This document shows, in pieces, positions 30,143 to 64,000 of a stretch of 64,000 bases of DNA. The DNA lies in the sequence record OQ031493.1; one strand, given 5' to 3'. Under the pieces are notes generated by a model. It was not told the DNA's origin and made no database searches. It saw only the letters and a list, made by a program, of their open reading frames with translations. The position numbers and the translations under genes were made by a program. Every line of letters starts with the position of its first letter. Position 1 is the stretch's first letter.

Positions 30143-33100
30143 TTAAATAACAGCACCTTTGGAAACTATCCAGTTAGTACCATCCCATAAGAGGGTAAGA
30201 ACTGTTTTAGTATCACCTAGGTCATCTACTATTACTGGAGTACCATTGTTCCATTGTAACACTGCACTAGAAAGTGTTGGCATAGCTACCTTACCAAGCA
30301 ATACAAGAACAGCTGTGATCATACGATCAACAGGTCCATTCTCTAGTGTAATGGTTTGGTTAGCAGCAGTTTGAACCCTATAGCACTGTTGGTTAGCTGG
30401 TGTTAGAGTTAAAGCTGTACCAGTGAATGTACTTGATTTTAGGCTATATGCATCGAATGATTTATCTAGCTTCTTCCAAGTAATATTAGTACCAGTACGG
30501 CTACGTAGCCAATCACCATCAGCGGTTACATCATTATTCGGCCCTTGGAATAGAGTCCATGATTTAGCCGCAGCATTACGTAGGAATAGTTGTCCACTAG
30601 TAGCATCAGCTTGATCAACTATAATAGTTACAGGTGTCCATTTAGAACCACTAGCTGTTTTCTCACGTACATAGTTAGTGCCATTAGCACCTTCACTAGG
30701 TACTTCACCAATAACTGCGGCTGGTACAGCTACCCATTCACCATTTTGCATACCCATTAGAGTATCATCGGTTTGCAGAGGTGCTACATCAACCCAGTTA
30801 CCAGCTACACGACCTTGAGGCTTAGTAGCTTGTGCAGTATCGCGTACTACATCTGAAGGAATTTCTGGGAATGTAATGGTAGCCCATTCAGTTTCACCCC
30901 CTGCAATACCTTTACGAACGTATTGTGCATTAACAACTGGACTAGGTACAGCATCAATGGCAGGTGTTGGTAATTCAATAGCAGTCCATTCAACAGCCCC
31001 GTCAGCGGTTGCTTTACGGCGACCATAGAAGACACCTACTTCAGCATCTACCACCTCATCAACAGGTAGTTCAGTCCAACCGAGTTTGTACCGAACCATT
31101 TTCTTATCGACATCTTCTGGATCGACTTCACTAACTGGAACTGACATTAATTTGTAGAATACAACCCAGTTAGCATCTTTATACCAAACGGTACCAGTTT
31201 TGTCGATACACCAGTCACCACGATTACCATCGATAGAAGTGGGTGCAGTTTGACCTTCAGGTAGAATTACCCAAGAGGATCCACGTTCACCTTTCTGACC
31301 GGTTTTACCAGGGATACCTGGAACACCTTGTTTGCCCTCAGGACCTTCAGGACCCTGCGGACCCATGGCTAAGACACCTAGGCTTTCCCAAGTAAATGTA
31401 CCTTCAGTATCGATACTTACAAATACTTCTACTTGTCCTTCAGTATTGGTGCGAATGGCAATACCTTTACCTACGTTATCAGCAGATGCTACTGGTTTAC
31501 CAGCATCATCACCAACATAGATAATTAATAGACCACCACCTTGTTTACCTTCAGGACCTTGTGGGCCTTCGACACCCTGGATACCCTGCTCACCATTTAG
31601 ATTAATTGGGCCGATATAGCCATCAATTTCCTGACCTTGGTAAGTATAGAGCATTGTACCTTCGTTAGTTTCAACCCAGTATGAATCACCAGTTACTAAG
31701 TCAGGATCAGTGTCTTTCTTTGGTAGTTGTGAAGCATCGGTTAAAACACCTTTAATGTTTAAACCTTCACCCGGTTTACCTTGCGGACCTGCCATAATAC
31801 CAATGCTAGTCCAGCGACTACCGTCCATGTTAACAAATACTTCGCCCGTGGACTTAACAGTATATGCTTTCCATTGGTTATCGGCAAGTGCTTCTGGTGG
31901 GGTATCTTCAGGAGTGTCAATCGCTGCGATGATCTGGATAGGTTCACCAGCGGGACCTTGTGGGCCTTCTGGTCCCTCGGGTCCTTCTGGTCCCTGATCA
32001 CCGTCTTTACCAGGTGCGCCATCTTCACCTTTAGGACCTCGATGTGTACCACTATTTACCCAATTACCATCTATCTTAACAAATAAGGTAGATGTGTCTT
32101 GTGTGAAGTACGCTGCCTGATCAGGAGCATCTGCCGGCAGGGCTGCCTCATTGGCAACAGCACCAGTAATAACTACGTTCTTACCATGTAGACTGATTAA
32201 CCATTCACCCTCAGTACCAGTGAAGCCATTGTCCAATGCTACTTGGAAAGCCGATTTACCTTGTGCCCCTGGTTCACCAGGTAGACCTTGTTCGCCATCT
32301 TCACCTTGCGGACCTTCAGGGCCCTGCGGGCCACGGAATGAACCCATGGCTGTCCATGAGATATCAACAGTCGGATCTTGGCCAGTCAGTACATAAACCG
32401 TATTGGTGGAACGTACTGAAACACCTTGGTATTGTTCTACACCAGTGGTGGTTAATAGATCATCAGCAGTTTCAACTGCTTTAACTACTTCTAAGTTACG
32501 ACCTTGTGGACCAGGTTCACCTTGTTTACCATCGGGACCCGGATCACCTGTATTACCTGGTTTACCTTGTGGGCCCTCAGGGCCTTGGAAAGTACCTAGG
32601 TCTGACCATGCCCCTTTTACAAAGATGAATAGATGTTCTGGTTTACCAGCTTCCATAGTAACTAAGTATGCTTCTGATTCTTTAGCTACAGATGGATCAG
32701 GTAAATCAGCTGGTGATGGTAGTGAATCCTTAATGGTAAACGGCATTGCTGGTTCACCCTGAGGACCTTCAGGACCAATTTCACCATCTTTACCTTGCGG
32801 ACCCTCAGGGCCCTCAGGTCCACGTTCACCCTGTGGTGTAACTGGGAACCAATCATAGTCATCAATAGTTGGATTCTCTGGCGGATTATTACCTGAGATA
32901 AGCATCCACGCCCAGAGTTGATTATTCCATGAGTAAGCATCTCCAGGTTTATTACTTTCAGTCTTAGGTAATTCTAAGTTATTAGGCCAACGACCACGGA
33001 TAACCAGACCAGTACCATCTGGACCACGAAGTGAACCTGTTTCAACCCAACGACCTTTTACAGGGGGATCTTCATTACCTAGCGGTGATTCCCATACCCA

Positions 33101-33424
33101 TAGCCGATCTTCAACGAACCAAGCATCACCGACATTATGCGTATCTAATGGTTTAATATCTTGTTCGAATGTTGCTAGATCAACATTAGCGATAATGTTA
33201 ATAGCCGGACCAACTGGGCCAGGGGGACCTTGATCGCCATCTTTACCCGGCTGACCATCTTCACCCTTTAATCCAGGTATAGTAACAGGATCAACGAAAG
33301 TGGTATTAAGACCCACCCCGGTAGAAACCGGGATGTGTCCATTAACTACAGAAGTGGGTTCATCAATTGATGATACCCGTTTGGGGAGTTCCCCGTTTAC
33401 ATAATCTTCAAATGCAGAAGCCAT
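30143..33424 (-). CDS. gp146: Collagen-like fibre protein
   Basis: About ten Gly-X-Y blocks (GPEGPQG...) alternating with W-containing globular knobs; one GKSAFQVALDNGFTGTEGEWLISL repeat; C-terminal fibre-like domain. Confidence 0.85.
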   Translation of the reverse strand: MASAFEDYVNGELPKRVSSIDEPTSVVNGHIPVSTGVGLNTTFVDPVTIPGLKGEDGQPGKDGDQGPPGPVGPAINIIANVDLATFEQDIKPLDTHNVGDAWFVEDRLWVWESPLGNEDPPVKGRWVETGSLRGPDGTGLVIRGRWPNNLELPKTESNKPGDAYSWNNQLWAWMLISGNNPPENPTIDDYDWFPVTPQGERGPEGPEGPQGKDGEIGPEGPQGEPAMPFTIKDSLPSPADLPDPSVAKESEAYLVTMEAGKPEHLFIFVKGAWSDLGTFQGPEGPQGKPGNTGDPGPDGKQGEPGPQGRNLEVVKAVETADDLLTTTGVEQYQGVSVRSTNTVYVLTGQDPTVDISWTAMGSFRGPQGPEGPQGEDGEQGLPGEPGAQGKSAFQVALDNGFTGTEGEWLISLHGKNVVITGAVANEAALPADAPDQAAYFTQDTSTLFVKIDGNWVNSGTHRGPKGEDGAPGKDGDQGPEGPEGPEGPQGPAGEPIQIIAAIDTPEDTPPEALADNQWKAYTVKSTGEVFVNMDGSRWTSIGIMAGPQGKPGEGLNIKGVLTDASQLPKKDTDPDLVTGDSYWVETNEGTMLYTYQGQEIDGYIGPINLNGEQGIQGVEGPQGPEGKQGGGLLIIYVGDDAGKPVASADNVGKGIAIRTNTEGQVEVFVSIDTEGTFTWESLGVLAMGPQGPEGPEGKQGVPGIPGKTGQKGERGSSWVILPEGQTAPTSIDGNRGDWCIDKTGTVWYKDANWVVFYKLMSVPVSEVDPEDVDKKMVRYKLGWTELPVDEVVDAEVGVFYGRRKATADGAVEWTAIELPTPAIDAVPSPVVNAQYVRKGIAGGETEWATITFPEIPSDVVRDTAQATKPQGRVAGNWVDVAPLQTDDTLMGMQNGEWVAVPAAVIGEVPSEGANGTNYVREKTASGSKWTPVTIIVDQADATSGQLFLRNAAAKSWTLFQGPNNDVTADGDWLRSRTGTNITWKKLDKSFDAYSLKSSTFTGTALTLTPANQQCYRVQTAANQTITLENGPVDRMITAVLVLLGKVAMPTLSSAVLQWNNGTPVIVDDLGDTKTVLTLLWDGTNWIVSKGAVI

Positions 33425-35793
33425 TATACTACTTCCTCAAGTTCGATTTTCATCAGTCCAGTGGTGTTGGATACAGCATTTGCTGAGTCACAGTTATACC
33501 ACTTATTGCCATCCTTGATGGTGTAGGTGTCAACTTGATTTGCATCGTCCGCCTTATAAGTGAAGTTTAAGCTACCAGTAGAACCTTTAGATAGGTTACT
33601 GCAACGTAGTTTACCAGTATTGGTTACTTCAGTACCAATATCAGTTTCACGGTTCGGCCAAGCAGCCACACTTAGAGTGCGGAATACAAATCCACCTAGT
33701 ACGTAAGTACCACCATTTACACTATTAGCTTCAACACCAGCTAAACCTTTTAGAACCACACTGTTAAAATCGTAGGTTCCTTTAGGATCATCGTCATGTA
33801 CTAGTAATGCACGTGTCCATACCTTACCAGTGGCATCAGATTTCCAATCCTCAGTAGCCCACTTACCGCCAGGCGCATTCATGGCCGGAGCTGCACTTAG
33901 TTTCTGAGTAGAGGTTAAAGTAATGACATGACTTTGTACTTGGGTTCCAAAGTTACCACCTGAGCGAAGGCGAGCTGCTGGATAGGTAACCGTTGCAGTA
34001 GGAGCCGCATTTGCAATAGCTACAACAGCAGTAGCCGTAGCTACACTACCATTAGCTGCACGTTTAGCAGTAATTAATAGGTTATTAGTGCTGTCGTTAT
34101 AAGTACCAGACTTATAAGTAACTACCTTAGCAATTTCTGCTTCATTTGCACTGGTTATAGTGAGCTGATCATTTGGTGAGGAATAAACCACACTATCAGC
34201 ATTAGATACTGTATTGGCTACAGTAGCAGTTTCACCTACTTTAATAGCACTTTGACCAGACGGATAAGTTACTTGACCAATATTAACAACTGGGCGAAGA
34301 TCGTTTAACTGCATGGTGTTAATTTTATCTTCGGAACCAGCATCACTGGAAGTAAACCATTCTGACCATGACCCAGTTGATTTCTGAACACGTACACGGA
34401 AACCATATGCCTTAGTAGTATTACCACGATCAGCTACGTAAAGACCAGTAACCTCTAGTTCTTTAGTAGGTGCAACAGTGCCACTACTTTCTTTCAGTGC
34501 ACCAAAGTCAGCAATTTCGTATGCTACTATATTTTCATCAGTAACAACTTTAATTGCAACAAGGTCATCTTCTTTAAGTTCTGTTTGACCTAACGGATAA
34601 CCGCCAGTAAATACAGCACTGGTAATATTAGCGGGAGTATCGGCTAATACCTTAGTAGTGAATTTAGCCCCATCGGCGTGTTCTACAACAATATCAGCAT
34701 AACCTTCAGTAGTAGGTGCACCAAGATCAATATCGGCGGTAGCAATCCACATGGGTGGATTAACGCCAGGAGTTACAACTGCATCTACGTTATTGATTTT
34801 AACACTAGGTACATAACTAGAATGTCCAGTTATTGCATCAACGATAACCCGAACATTACTAGTGGTCGATAGGCATGACTGTACGCTGTGTCCATCAGGG
34901 GTACGCACAATACTACCTACGTTCTGACTGGGATCAGTTGCTTGTACATCTTTGACGAATACACCGCCACTAATACCTTCATTTTTAGGAAGGTTCTTAA
35001 GATCAACGGTCGTTTCATCAACGCCTTCAACAATACGGATATTACCGTCATTCTTGAATGCAATGTAATCAGTTAAACTACCAATCTGGAATTCACCATT
35101 GTCATAAATACGAATTTCAGACTCAGGTAATTCGGGTAATGCACCTTGCGTAGTGGGCGCAGAAGCGTTCTTTAGATAAGAATAACCTTCTGCTTCCATA
35201 CGACCTTGTTCCATCATACGCTGAGGTATTTTATCACCAGCAGTTAAGTCGTCTTGATTTAGACGCTTATCAAACAGGAAAGCAAAGTTATGGAAAGCAG
35301 CGTTGGATGATAATCCACCATTCTTGCCAGTTACACGCAGTACATCTTTAACTGTGTAACCTTGTTGATTTAAGAGCGACTGGAGTAGTTCAGCAGTCAT
35401 GGTTGCATGCAGTGATGTTAACCATTCCTGTTCAGTACCTTGGAAACCGTTTTCCACAGCTACTTCATATGCACTCTTACCAACATCACCTTTAAGGGAT
35501 GCTATAAACTCTTCTTCAGTACCAACGAAACCTAGATCGACTGCGATTTGATAAGAAGATTTACCTTTAAGCGAATCAAGCCATTCGGTTTCAGTTCCCT
35601 GGAAACCATTTTTAACGGCAATCTCGTACGCACTAAGACCGGGTGCTCCAGTCTGTAGTTTTGACAGCAGAAACTTATAGTTATCGACTTGACCAGCTGC
35701 ATCGGTATGAATTAATTCAATATACTCGCTATCGTTAAGAGTAGCTAGATCCGGCAGTTGACTGATCTTGCCTTTGTCTGTAGCATTTGCCAT
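33424..35793 (-). CDS. gp145: Fibre-associated virion protein
   Basis: KISQLP N-terminal motif, three SAYE.A...GF.GTE.EWL.SL repeats, beta-rich Ig-like C-terminal region; TAATG coupling to gp146. Confidence 0.75.
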   Translation of the reverse strand: MANATDKGKISQLPDLATLNDSEYIELIHTDAAGQVDNYKFLLSKLQTGAPGLSAYEIAVKNGFQGTETEWLDSLKGKSSYQIAVDLGFVGTEEEFIASLKGDVGKSAYEVAVENGFQGTEQEWLTSLHATMTAELLQSLLNQQGYTVKDVLRVTGKNGGLSSNAAFHNFAFLFDKRLNQDDLTAGDKIPQRMMEQGRMEAEGYSYLKNASAPTTQGALPELPESEIRIYDNGEFQIGSLTDYIAFKNDGNIRIVEGVDETTVDLKNLPKNEGISGGVFVKDVQATDPSQNVGSIVRTPDGHSVQSCLSTTSNVRVIVDAITGHSSYVPSVKINNVDAVVTPGVNPPMWIATADIDLGAPTTEGYADIVVEHADGAKFTTKVLADTPANITSAVFTGGYPLGQTELKEDDLVAIKVVTDENIVAYEIADFGALKESSGTVAPTKELEVTGLYVADRGNTTKAYGFRVRVQKSTGSWSEWFTSSDAGSEDKINTMQLNDLRPVVNIGQVTYPSGQSAIKVGETATVANTVSNADSVVYSSPNDQLTITSANEAEIAKVVTYKSGTYNDSTNNLLITAKRAANGSVATATAVVAIANAAPTATVTYPAARLRSGGNFGTQVQSHVITLTSTQKLSAAPAMNAPGGKWATEDWKSDATGKVWTRALLVHDDDPKGTYDFNSVVLKGLAGVEANSVNGGTYVLGGFVFRTLSVAAWPNRETDIGTEVTNTGKLRCSNLSKGSTGSLNFTYKADDANQVDTYTIKDGNKWYNCDSANAVSNTTGLMKIELEEVV

Positions 35794-35998: not shown

Positions 35999-36820
<822 letters not shown>

Positions 36821-36842: not shown

Positions 36843-37376
36843 TTAACTTTCTAGATAACGGATTTGACCATTTTCTAGATAACGTGCTGCACCATTCTCT
36901 AATAGTCGGATAGTATCTGACGTATCATCAATACGTTGGATTAGTATATTACATTCACCATAGTAAGCATAGCTACTCGACATAGCTACTATCGTGTATG
37001 GAACAACATCCGTAGTTGCATTGATTGGTGTTGTATCAAATGAAACATCATCTGGACCAAGCTTCCAACCTCGTGAACGGTTAATTTCTTCAGCAATTGC
37101 TTTAGGTGTTAAAGTACCAACTATCTTAAGGATAGATCCTTCACCAATAGCACGTGGATCAGCAAAATCTAACCGACGGTAAGTTAACATGTACTTAATG
37201 TCAGTAGTGATGTCGATCATTTCAATAAATGTACGTCCAGGCTCAATCGTGGTTGGACTAAAAAACATATCTTCAAATGTAACTGTTTCTGGTTTGAAGT
37301 TTATTTTTAAATCATCCCGCGCAAGTTTTACTAGCGCATTCCTCGATGCCATGTCATACGGAAAGATATCCTGCAT
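36843..37376 (-). CDS. gp143: Virion-type protein with C-terminal triple RxLENG repeat
   Basis: YRRLDF paralog-family domain; ends IRLLENGAARYLENGQIRYLES. Confidence 0.75.
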   Translation of the reverse strand: MQDIFPYDMASRNALVKLARDDLKINFKPETVTFEDMFFSPTTIEPGRTFIEMIDITTDIKYMLTYRRLDFADPRAIGEGSILKIVGTLTPKAIAEEINRSRGWKLGPDDVSFDTTPINATTDVVPYTIVAMSSSYAYYGECNILIQRIDDTSDTIRLLENGAARYLENGQIRYLES

Positions 37377-37458: not shown

Positions 37459-37854
37459 TTATTGCATAAGCATCTTTATTAATTCAAAGGTACCTTGCAC
37501 AATAGTCTTTAACACATTGGCACTTTCTTCTGACATAGGTGCACCAGATAAAACTACCATAGTAGATACTGATGCCCCAATAAGAGTAACGCCACCAGCT
37601 AATACCAATACCGCATTACGGTAAGAATCTTTAGCCTTCACTTCAGCAATTTCCCGGCTGAGAATTTTATATTGAAGATCTGAATCGGTAATAGCATAAA
37701 TTAGACTAAGTACTTCCTCACCAGTTATACTTAGATTTATACGTTGTTCCTTTTCCAATACACTATTCAAATAGGTACGTATCTTCTTTCCATAGTCTTT
37801 AGAAGAAGATAAAGGATTACCATCGATCTCAATCAGAACGTCCTCTAGGGTCAT
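37459..37854 (-). CDS. Membrane protein, holin/antiholin candidate
   Basis: GGAG RBS before ATG 37854; TM AVLVLAGGVTLIGASVSTMVVL plus C-terminal amphipathic helix; directly follows spanin genes. Confidence 0.55.
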   Translation of the reverse strand: MTLEDVLIEIDGNPLSSSKDYGKKIRTYLNSVLEKEQRINLSITGEEVLSLIYAITDSDLQYKILSREIAEVKAKDSYRNAVLVLAGGVTLIGASVSTMVVLSGAPMSEESANVLKTIVQGTFELIKMLMQ

Positions 37855-38191
37855 GACTATTCTCCAAATTACGTTGACGTTCGTTCCATTCACGCAATTT
37901 GTCTACTTGGATATTACATAGTCCAAGTGCATCAGTTTGTAAAAGCCAATGTTCGGTCATAAGTAAGAAACGTGCTTCATTCTCATCAGTAACCCCAACA
38001 GCTTTATATCTATCTAATGCATTGATGATCTCATTAGCTGTAGGTGGGGCTTCCACATCGCAAGGGAGAAGTAAACTACTTGGGATTGCAACTGGTATTT
38101 TCACGGGAGGCGGCACAGTAGTGCTCGTACATCCGTTTAGCAATAGCATTAATAGACTTATTAATGTTATCTTTTTTTGTGTCAGTTTCAT
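37829..38191 (-). CDS. o-spanin (Rz1-like lipoprotein)
   Basis: MKLTQKKITLISLLMLLLNGC lipobox, Pro-rich VPPPVKIPVAIPSSLLLPC, later C; starts inside the i-spanin gene in another frame. Confidence 0.8.
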   Translation of the reverse strand: MKLTQKKITLISLLMLLLNGCTSTTVPPPVKIPVAIPSSLLLPCDVEAPPTANEIINALDRYKAVGVTDENEARFLLMTEHWLLQTDALGLCNIQVDKLREWNERQRNLENSHDPRGRSD

Positions 38192-38582
38192 GTTTAATCT
38201 CAGTAGTGGTGCTTTCCCCATTAGTTGTTTTAGCTTTAACCTCAGGCCATACAGGTGGAGTATATCCACGACCTGATAAACTAATGTACTCATCAATCAC
38301 CTCAGTGCGTGATTGCGCCTGCTCTTTTTGTATCTCTTTCTTTTTAGTAATTAGTTCAGCTTGAATTTTATCGGAGATACGATCTGATTCAATCCTAACC
38401 TTTTCTGCCGCTTCATAAGATTTAATTTTTCCAATTAAATCTGTAGAGCGAACAAGTTCCGTCTCATAACTATTTTTGTAATATATGATACCAATTAAGG
38501 CACCTATCAGAATAACTAATAGTAACCATATATGCAATGGCACGCTACCAATTATTTTTCGTATACCTGCTAATAGGAACAT
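38076..38582 (-). CDS. i-spanin (Rz-like)
   Basis: N-terminal TM IWLLLVILIGALIGIIYY, coiled coil, two C-terminal Cys. Confidence 0.8.
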   Translation of the reverse strand: MFLLAGIRKIIGSVPLHIWLLLVILIGALIGIIYYKNSYETELVRSTDLIGKIKSYEAAEKVRIESDRISDKIQAELITKKKEIQKEQAQSRTEVIDEYISLSGRGYTPPVWPEVKAKTTNGESTTTEIKHETDTKKDNINKSINAIAKRMYEHYCAASRENTSCNPK

Positions 38583-54917: not shown

Positions 54918-55793
<876 letters not shown>

Positions 55794-55801
55794 GGTGTGT
55801 A

Positions 55802-56245
55802 ATGGCTGATACAAGAGCTGAATTAGTAGCTGCTTGGAATGTGGCTAATAAACCTAAAGATAATAATGGTAAGCCTAGGGATTTAACTGTTGATGATGTT
55901 GAATTTATAGGGACTGATACATTCTTAGCAACTGGTACAAATGCCAAAACAACAATGAGAGCGAAGACCAGTTCACTTTATTTTAAAGGTGAGACAGTTA
56001 TTTACTTTAATAGACGCTCTTTACCAGAGTACTGTCTTGGTATAAAAGTACCGGGTAAACCAACTGACTATACTGATAATTTAGAAGTAGCTGAAAAATT
56101 AAGAGATGTTTACGGTATTCCATTTATTATAGATGAGATACAACCGCAACCTATTACTGGGAATACGGTTACGATACATCCATACTTTAATAACTTGTCG
56201 TGGATACCAACAATACCAGTAACTCTTGAATTTGAAAGTAGTTAA
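55802..56245 (+). CDS. Virion protein of the same paralog family (gp126 position)
   Basis: YFKGETVIYFNRRSL motif; GAGG RBS. Confidence 0.7.
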   Translation: MADTRAELVAAWNVANKPKDNNGKPRDLTVDDVEFIGTDTFLATGTNAKTTMRAKTSSLYFKGETVIYFNRRSLPEYCLGIKVPGKPTDYTDNLEVAEKLRDVYGIPFIIDEIQPQPITGNTVTIHPYFNNLSWIPTIPVTLEFESS

Positions 56246-62470: not shown

Positions 62471-62474
62471 GTTA

Positions 62475-62552
62475 CTATTCTAACTTCCGGGCATTACCGT
62501 CTTCCAAATAACGGATAGTCCCATTTTCTAGATAACGGTAACCCTTTCCAGC
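62475..62552 (-). CDS. Putative readthrough extension of the major capsid protein (25 aa)
   Basis: In frame after TGA: AGKGYRYLENGTIRYLEDGNARKLE-TAG; same repeat as the gp143 C-terminus. Confidence 0.6.
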   Translation of the reverse strand, partial: AGKGYRYLENGTIRYLEDGNARKLE

Positions 62553-64000
62553 TCACGGCTTAAGATCAGCAAGCTTACCGTTGAACTGAGTTTCACCCAT
62601 GACTTTCTGGAAGCCAGTGATCTTGAACTCTAGCGCGAACGGAATGTTGTTGACGTGTAGGTTGAACGGAATGGCCGCGATTTCGCGAGTAACCTGGTGA
62701 CCACCACGAGTGATCGGTAGGTCAGCGATAACAGTAGATACGTAGAAGAACTGACCCCAGGAGAGGATGTCGTTTTCTTGTTGTACTGCGCGGGTCGGAA
62801 TTACAACTAGCTTACCATCAAATAGCTGGTTGTTGGTGGAAACGATATCGTACTTGAGATAAGCACCTAGAGTACGGTCGTCACCTTTAGTCATTAGATA
62901 GTTAGCAATCTCTTTGTCGGAGCAGAAGAGATACATCGGAGTTTCATCCTGGTTACCGGAGATAACACGGAAGGCAGCTTCAATGTTGGAATCACGGTGA
63001 GCCGGGAATAGCTCAGCTTTAACACAGTTTAGGATCGCAGCGCAAACGTCGTCCCAACGATCTTTAGACTTGATGGTGTCGATGACTTTCTCAAGATCTA
63101 GTTCTTTGTAACGATAGGTCGGACGCATTACAGCGGATAGTGCACCTTCGATGATACCAAACTTCGGACGGTTGTAACCATTGTGTACAACTTCACGTAG
63201 TTGAGCAAGGTAGTTAAGCATGCGCTTAACAGCGTTGTTGCTGTTACGGATGTTGGTGTTAACAGTTAGAGCTTTAACAACCTCACCCGGACCTTCATCG
63301 GTCATGGTGTCCATCGGTAGAGTTACAGGAGCGTGCATCGGGATCGGATGACGGAACTGTAGCGCACGGGTCTGTAGTAGGTGACCACGCTGACGACGGT
63401 TAGTGTTGGTGAAGCGAGTGTCTAGTTCGAAACCGATAACCGCTAGGTCAGTTAGCTGATCTAGAATAGCTTTAACAGCCGGGTCAGCATTATCCATTAC
63501 CTGACCATCTTCGTTTAGAACTTTATCGACGTAAGTGTCGGTAGCACCAAACTTAGAATCGCCTTTGGATAGGCTGATTGTACCACCAAAACCAACGCTT
63601 AGACGTAGGCTTAGTTTAGCAGTCTTAAGGTCGTTAATAACGCCATCAGCTGAACCGTCGATGAAAGTGGTATCGCCACTAACAACAAGGTCATCGCTAT
63701 CGAAACGGATAACTGCGTTCCGGGTATCACCAACTAGATCGGGCTGGAACACAGCGCGAGGTAGACGGTCAACCTTGAACTTAACAACTTTACCGCCGAG
63801 TAGAACGAATAGGTTCTTTAGACGACCAGCCGGATCAATGGTGTCAGAAACTTCAAGCATGCCACGCTGAATGAGTAGGTTAGCATTGGAGTTACCCATT
63901 AGATCAAGACGTACGTTCGCTTTTAGCGGAGCAGTAGTGATAGTTAGGTTCTGCTCGTTCTTGATGGTGTACGGAGGAACAAGAGCCGGGTCTACGAAGA
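62553..64000 (-). CDS. gp120: Major capsid protein (3' part; frame open to the window end)
   Basis: Strong high-expression codon bias (AAC, TTC, ATC, CTA); position upstream of gp121-123; the track's Met at 63899 is internal. Confidence 0.88.
   Translation of the reverse strand, partial: FVDPALVPPYTIKNEQNLTITTAPLKANVRLDLMGNSNANLLIQRGMLEVSDTIDPAGRLKNLFVLLGGKVVKFKVDRLPRAVFQPDLVGDTRNAVIRFDSDDLVVSGDTTFIDGSADGVINDLKTAKLSLRLSVGFGGTISLSKGDSKFGATDTYVDKVLNEDGQVMDNADPAVKAILDQLTDLAVIGFELDTRFTNTNRRQRGHLLQTRALQFRHPIPMHAPVTLPMDTMTDEGPGEVVKALTVNTNIRNSNNAVKRMLNYLAQLREVVHNGYNRPKFGIIEGALSAVMRPTYRYKELDLEKVIDTIKSKDRWDDVCAAILNCVKAELFPAHRDSNIEAAFRVISGNQDETPMYLFCSDKEIANYLMTKGDDRTLGAYLKYDIVSTNNQLFDGKLVVIPTRAVQQENDILSWGQFFYVSTVIADLPITRGGHQVTREIAAIPFNLHVNNIPFALEFKITGFQKVMGETQFNGKLADLKP

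Follow-up and report, generated by a model that had tools for sequence, protein, structure and literature searches.

What purpose is served by a short three-fold repeat that forms the very end of a phage virion protein, encoded on the same strand as two fibre genes? The question is raised by gp143 within a 64,000 nt stretch of DNA from record OQ031493.1 (the window), which derives from a phiKZ-type Pseudomonas jumbo phage; it is 100% identical over the tested 4.5 kb to phage MRostami-2023c and 99.3% identical to phiKZ. The gp143 gene occupies 36843-37376 on the minus strand (177 aa plus TAA) and its product ends in IRLLENGAARYLENGQIRYLES. In particular, positions 36843-36911 cover the TAA stop (36843-36845) and the last 22 codons (36846-36911, residues 156-177), which read I-RLLENGAA-RYLENGQI-RYLES and have a 20-residue core at 36849-36908. 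Tandem Repeats Finder reports a 24 nt period with 2.2 copies, and the element is therefore two complete 8-residue units followed by a terminal R-Y-L-E-S, an architecture that its relatives share. A degenerate DNA pattern for two units matched four times in the window, twice at this locus and twice behind the stop codon of the capsid gene, while none was found in 100 dinucleotide-preserving shuffles. The repeat reported in the preliminary description is thus confirmed.

The tail is the best-kept part of the protein. Nine orthologues from nine phiKZ-like phages (42-52% identity) all retain it, as do 39 homologues from a large protein collection, down to 32% identity. Across these 39 homologues, R157, E160, R165, E168 and R173 are invariant and G170 is nearly so; the mean pairwise identity is 0.59 in the tail, compared to 0.45 in the body.

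The body of gp143 (residues 1-150; 36927-37376, minus strand) had been described only as a Y-x-R-L-D family domain, which corresponds to Pfam DUF7941 (PF25613). The Pfam match of gp143 itself is weak (18.3 bits, E 0.0017, residues 64-148) and falls below the family's gathering score of 27 bits, although sixteen homologues carry a precomputed PF25613.2 hit; phrog_2935, annotated as 'virion structural protein', matches with a score of 4.6e-46. The motif is present as Y66-R67-R68-L69-D70, with R67, R68 and L69 invariant in the 39 homologues, and it is also found in gp127, gp126 and Goslar gp22, gp23, gp31, gp33 and gp34. An AF2 model built on the alignment (pLDDT 90.6) has one significant Foldseek match in the PDB, the 150-residue chain 9xqd_0 of the phiKZ outer peripheral baseplate (E 7.5e-7, TM 0.61/0.71), indicating that the predicted fold is that of the DUF7941 N-domain. 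By its length and entry title, this chain is taken to be the N-domain of gp127 (residues 1-150), an identity that rests on a preprint on Escherichia phage Goslar (10.64898/2026.04.21.720040), which cites the entry as 9QXD. The same preprint lists gp126, gp127 and gp143 as the phiKZ members of DUF7941. The genes of gp127 and gp126 lie at 54921-56245 on the plus strand; gp127 is modelled in the outer peripheral baseplate and neither protein carries the tag.

The genes around gp143 are all on the minus strand. The gp144 endolysin (PG_binding_1 plus SLT; 35999-36781) lies between gp143 and gp145, a 789-aa fibre-type virion protein (33424-35793) that starts with MANATDKGKISQLPDLATL and that is reported as essential in phage TnSeq. 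Further along, gp146 (30143-33424) has collagen repeats. On the other side of gp143 is gp142 (37459-37854), the published holin whose timing gp143 modulates.

A search of all six frames, including the sequence behind stop codons, had been suggested in advance, and it was carried out on the window and then on the whole phiKZ genome. The tandem tag was found at only one other place, directly behind and in frame with the TGA stop (62553-62555) of the major capsid gene gp120 on the minus strand. There, 25 in-frame codons (62478-62552) encode AGKGY-RYLENGTI-RYLEDGNA-RKLE and end in TAG TAA (62472-62477), followed by a terminator hairpin. The same layout holds in PhiPA3, PS119XW, Phabio, 201phi2-1, RVTF4 and Psa21, and in 18 of 19 phiKZ-like capsid loci from IMG/VR, where TGA is followed by 24-30 sense codons with three R-x-x-E-x-G units and then a stop. 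The remaining locus (L062, IMG/VR contig 3300035492_000331, 231 kb) is the one phiKZ-related capsid gene that ends in TAA, with only an 8-codon remnant (ASRLRLEP; 1331-1360) behind it, and yet the same contig still has a gp143 homologue with a full tag. The DNA has diverged most at third codon positions (237, 202 and 491 differences by codon position in the first repeat unit), and the extension is therefore conserved as protein, from which readthrough is inferred; no paper found mentions the extended protein. In contrast, the capsid genes of SPN3US, Deimos-Minion, RSL2, DT01 and LucasX end in TAA with no extension and have no RLLEDG-type tag.

A first working model, drawn from the Goslar preprint and from parallels in Goslar and LucasX, was that the tail is the ligand of a DUF7941 N-domain, plugging gp143 into another DUF7941 protein (gp143 itself, gp126 or gp127), with the capsid extension nucleating chains of gp143 on the head. 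The Goslar preprint reports that AlphaFold docks the linker of one DUF7941 protomer on the N-domain of the next, and that gp22 forms filaments. Three Goslar-type loci in the IMG/VR set also end in TGA but carry a different extension. In Goslar itself, the capsid gene gp41 ends in TGA and is followed by a 28-codon in-frame extension (TTVAASLDDILDDNVADGFIAPDIHPAP) and a terminator (Goslar sequences L022:20586-20675 and L023:3863-4405); its core (…LDDILDDNVADGFIAPD…) copies the C-terminal tail of the abundant short DUF7941 protein gp23 (…LATVLADNVADGFVKPT…) and the linker motif of gp22, gp31, gp33 and gp34, though the preprint does not mention readthrough. Similarly, the capsid protein of Xanthomonas phage LucasX, which has about 19 DUF7941 modules, ends constitutively in …VANVYLDGLKYPTP (…VYLDGLKYPTP; L069:1160-1209 and L083), closely resembling the tail …SVYLQGLGYPYQ (…VYLQGLGYPYQ) of one of its short DUF7941 proteins. 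Further, a gene cluster of Salmonella phage SPN3US (L066:5394-25347), taken to be its 'paralog family B', gives strong DUF7941 Pfam hits; that family was reported on the heads of a tailless mutant (PMC5694885), and one member fuses the DUF7941 N-domain to a GP38 tail-fibre adhesin domain, which sits uneasily with the proposal that DUF7941 proteins attach only to the peripheral baseplate. However, the DUF7941 linker motif (LxGLxYP) and the RLLEDG tag are different peptides, gp126 and gp127 lack the tag, and, as described next, the tag is common in small phages with no detected DUF7941 protein, where its receptor cannot be DUF7941, and it tracks KIS-start fibres statistically. This explanation was accordingly downgraded and is considered unlikely, although the different tail of gp23, the positional counterpart of gp143 in Goslar, which AlphaFold docks on a DUF7941 N-domain, hints at a different receptor logic in that lineage.

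To identify what the tag accompanies elsewhere, a DNA pattern for two units was scanned against IMG/VR, yielding 55 loci, of which 46 are not phiKZ-like. In those loci, the three-unit tag, (RLLEDGxx)2-RxLE, sits at the extreme C-terminus of quite different proteins, including a Tail_P2_I baseplate protein (E 1e-42), distal tail and 'tail protein' families, a tail tube protein, and tiny ORFs of 45-70 residues. The gp143 tail aligns without gaps to 18 tags from unrelated phages and to the capsid extension; it fits the definition of the module as three 8-residue units with R1, E4 and G6 invariant and the third unit ending at R-x-L-E. One residue (S) follows the last LE of gp143, within the 0-3 residues that define a position at the extreme C-terminus, and 27 of 39 dereplicated non-phiKZ loci have a tail of at most 24 residues. 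Readthrough or frameshifting as the general way of adding the tag in unrelated phages was rejected because most small tag ORFs have their own start codon. No Pfam family covers the tag or its candidate partner described below.

The gene downstream of the tag shows a strong bias. In 14 of 24 dereplicated loci from unrelated phages, the next ORF starts with [KR][ILV][ST]x[LFM] within 16 residues, for example MADLKISQLTAAT, MAGKITDLTEL and MANKKISELTVAG, as compared to 4 of 584 other ORFs in the same loci (Fisher p = 6e-19); the downstream proteins look like fibres. The other ten loci have a different next gene, and seven of these are one tail-tube family followed by a neck gene. More KIS-start ORFs lie elsewhere in tag-bearing loci, and two prophage-like MAG contigs, from Cloacimonadota and Chloroflexota, show the same pairing. 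The co-occurrence of LLxEDG-type repeats with KISxLP starts, which the preliminary description had put forward, is therefore real and very strong in unrelated phages.

In phiKZ, gp145 starts with MANATDKGKISQLPDLATLNDSEYIELI and is the only virion ORF with that start. Its N-terminal KIS module (MA..GKISQLPDLATLNDSEYIELI...N.K; 35659-35793, minus strand) is the proposed socket for the tag, and it aligns over about 45 residues with its orthologues in eight phiKZ-like phages and with the N-termini of fibre genes that follow the tag in unrelated phages. In phiKZ-like phages, the endolysin gene intervenes and the KIS-start gene is the second downstream in all nine loci; the eight phages other than phiKZ have one or two KIS-start fibre genes right after the endolysin. 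In particular, several of them (RVTF4, PS119XW, Psa21 and PhiPA3; L009, L011, L012 and L014, respectively) have two such genes where phiKZ has one, and these genomes also have two tag sites, the gp143 orthologue and the capsid extension. In contrast, gp146 has no KIS-type start. Five chimalliviruses that lack an R-x-x-E-x-G tag were also examined, and four of them lack the KIS module. The fifth, Erwinia phage Deimos-Minion, has a 177-aa DUF7941 N-domain protein (E 3e-28) ending in LLTESGQWLTTEDGQPLKLESVA (LLTESGQW-LTTEDGQP-LKLESVA), an Arg-less variant with the same 8-residue period, which is followed after 59 nt by a 1035-aa collagen fibre with a KIS-type start. LucasX has a 170-aa DUF7941 protein ending in LLTREGDP-IYTREGDF-LFVSE, directly before a 468-aa cadherin-like protein.

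Overall, the most likely reading, with a probability of roughly 0.58, is that the RxLE[N/D]G triple repeat is a portable fibre-docking handle of about 20 residues, with consensus (R-L-L-E-D-G-x-x)2-R-x-L-E, whose likely partner is a roughly 40-residue N-terminal KIS module (MA..GKISxLxxLxxLxGxExxEV......N.[KR]) of fibre proteins, found in phiKZ only on gp145. In this view, gp143 would be an adaptor, whose DUF7941 N-domain would seat it in the virion's DUF7941 network, of which the paralogue gp127 sits in the outer peripheral baseplate, while its tail would hold a gp145-type fibre, and the same handle encoded behind the leaky TGA of the capsid gene would be offered by a minority of capsid subunits. 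The analysis establishes the anatomy, conservation and uniqueness of the tag, the DUF7941 fold of the body as modelled, and the coupling of tag and KIS-start gene across phages; physical binding, the matching of one repeat to each chain of a trimeric fibre, the location of gp143 in the virion and the actual readthrough of the capsid stop are inferred. The idea in the preliminary description that the repeat is a peptide handle recruiting fibres, both on gp143 and on readthrough capsid subunits, is thus partly supported: gene context favours it for gp145 but not for gp146, and the evidence is comparative alone. That description also overlooked the DUF7941 nature of the body and a published lysis-timing phenotype. 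Further, profile searches of the PDB with the tag and KIS module alignments gave only chance hits, and gp143, gp145 and gp146 have no PDB sequence match. The reading is also limited by the endolysin gene that separates the tag gene from the fibre gene in phiKZ-like phages, by the ten of 24 unrelated loci with a different next gene, and by the published holin-regulating role of gp143. Moreover, gp143 tolerates transposon insertions whereas gp145 is essential, so that gp143 cannot be the only anchor of gp145.

The published phenotype raises the alternative that the tail belongs to a cytoplasmic role of gp143 as a regulator of the gp142 holin and has nothing to do with the virion. The gene sits inside the lysis cassette; deleting it from a plasmid-borne cassette delays lysis by about 15 min, co-expression advances holin triggering by about 10 min and blocks a truncated holin, and AF3 predicts a gp142-gp143 heterodimer (PMC12894885). 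However, that model places the interface on the first globular domain and the study does not mention the repeat. In addition, gp143 and its 201phi2-1 orthologue are recorded as virion proteins by mass spectrometry, and the same tag occurs on the capsid extension and on tail and baseplate proteins of phages where no holin is adjacent. This alternative is considered very unlikely, and the lysis-timing effect may be a second role of the globular domain. The record notes for 201phi2-1 (L013, gp226-gp228; window 37459-38582) state that the counterparts of the i-spanin gp141 (by position), the holin gp142 and gp143 were all identified in virions by mass spectrometry, which is odd for membrane lysis proteins. 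Holin regulators such as T4 RI/RIII and P1 LydB have no sequence or fold relation to gp143, and the tag has no counterpart in them.

A third alternative is that the tail is a self-contained three-stranded beta-meander that only caps or stabilises the protein end, or drives self-association, without a specific partner. The AF2 monomer gives the tail a pLDDT of 75-85 and shows beta-bridges at 156/158, 164/166 and 172/174, one pair per repeat, and Asn-Gly and Asp-Gly are classic tight-turn pairs. However, this does not explain why the same module is appended to unrelated platform proteins and, by inferred readthrough, to the capsid, why a KIS-start fibre gene follows, or why tiny proteins exist that are little more than the tag; it is also considered unlikely.

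Several known systems share parts of this arrangement. Like Goslar gp23, gp143 is a short DUF7941 protein (N-domain plus tail) that lies next to the endolysin and fibre genes and has its tail copied behind the capsid gene's TGA, but its tail is the RLLEDG repeat, which also occurs outside chimalliviruses, instead of the LxGLxYP-type linker. In fibre attachment through baseplate proteins such as P2 gpI and Mu gp48, and through the N-terminal anchor domains of tail fibres (T7 gp17, T4 gp34), a platform protein offers a site to the N-terminus of a trimeric fibre encoded downstream; here, the proposed site is a portable peptide of three repeats, shared by unrelated platforms (baseplate, distal tail, tube and capsid) and paired with one recognisable N-terminal module. 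No description of such a pairing was found in the literature that could be searched, and a full-text search for the motif strings returned only noise. Minor capsid proteins made by stop codon readthrough or 3′ frameshifting (Qbeta A1 by UGA readthrough; the extended capsid and tail proteins of Listeria phage PSA and SPP1) likewise give a minority of subunits a C-terminal addition through a leaky signal at the end of a major structural gene, but the addition here has only 25 residues and copies the tail of another virion protein.

If the tag and the KIS module bind, fibre attachment in many phages could be read from two short sequence signatures, aiding the annotation of 'hypothetical' tail genes and the design of fibre swaps in laboratory phages. 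For phiKZ, it would assign a structural role to gp143, so far seen only as a lysis regulator, name a partner for the unplaced essential fibre gp145, give the conserved capsid extension a purpose as a site for head-borne fibres at low dose, and qualify the recent proposal that DUF7941 proteins sit only at the baseplate periphery. A broader and more tentative possibility, somewhat less likely than not, is a general plug-and-socket code of tailed phages, in which three RLLEDGxx units, one per chain of a trimeric fibre, capture the KIS module of any fibre that carries it; phages could then hang the same fibre on the baseplate, distal tail, tail tube or, through dosed UGA readthrough, the capsid, with chimalliviruses using a short DUF7941 protein as the adaptor. 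Fibre placement would then be predictable from sequence and transferable between phages.

The tail-tube family in the IMG/VR set (L092:3378-3869 and relatives L093, L102, L108, L110, L134 and L136, with L147 from a Saccharibacteria MAG) consists of proteins of about 165 aa (Pfam Phage_tail_2) that carry the RLLEDG tag at the C-terminus, where the next gene is a neck/tail-completion gene and not a fibre; one such locus (L125) has a KIS-start ORF 7.6 kb downstream. This arrangement would place fibre handles along the whole tail tube. In two other tag-bearing loci (L090:8866-10120 and L105:7389-9859), the order is reversed, and a KIS-start protein is followed by a Gly/Ala/Ser-rich protein that begins with the tag; in L090, the two are in the same frame, separated only by TAG and four codons.
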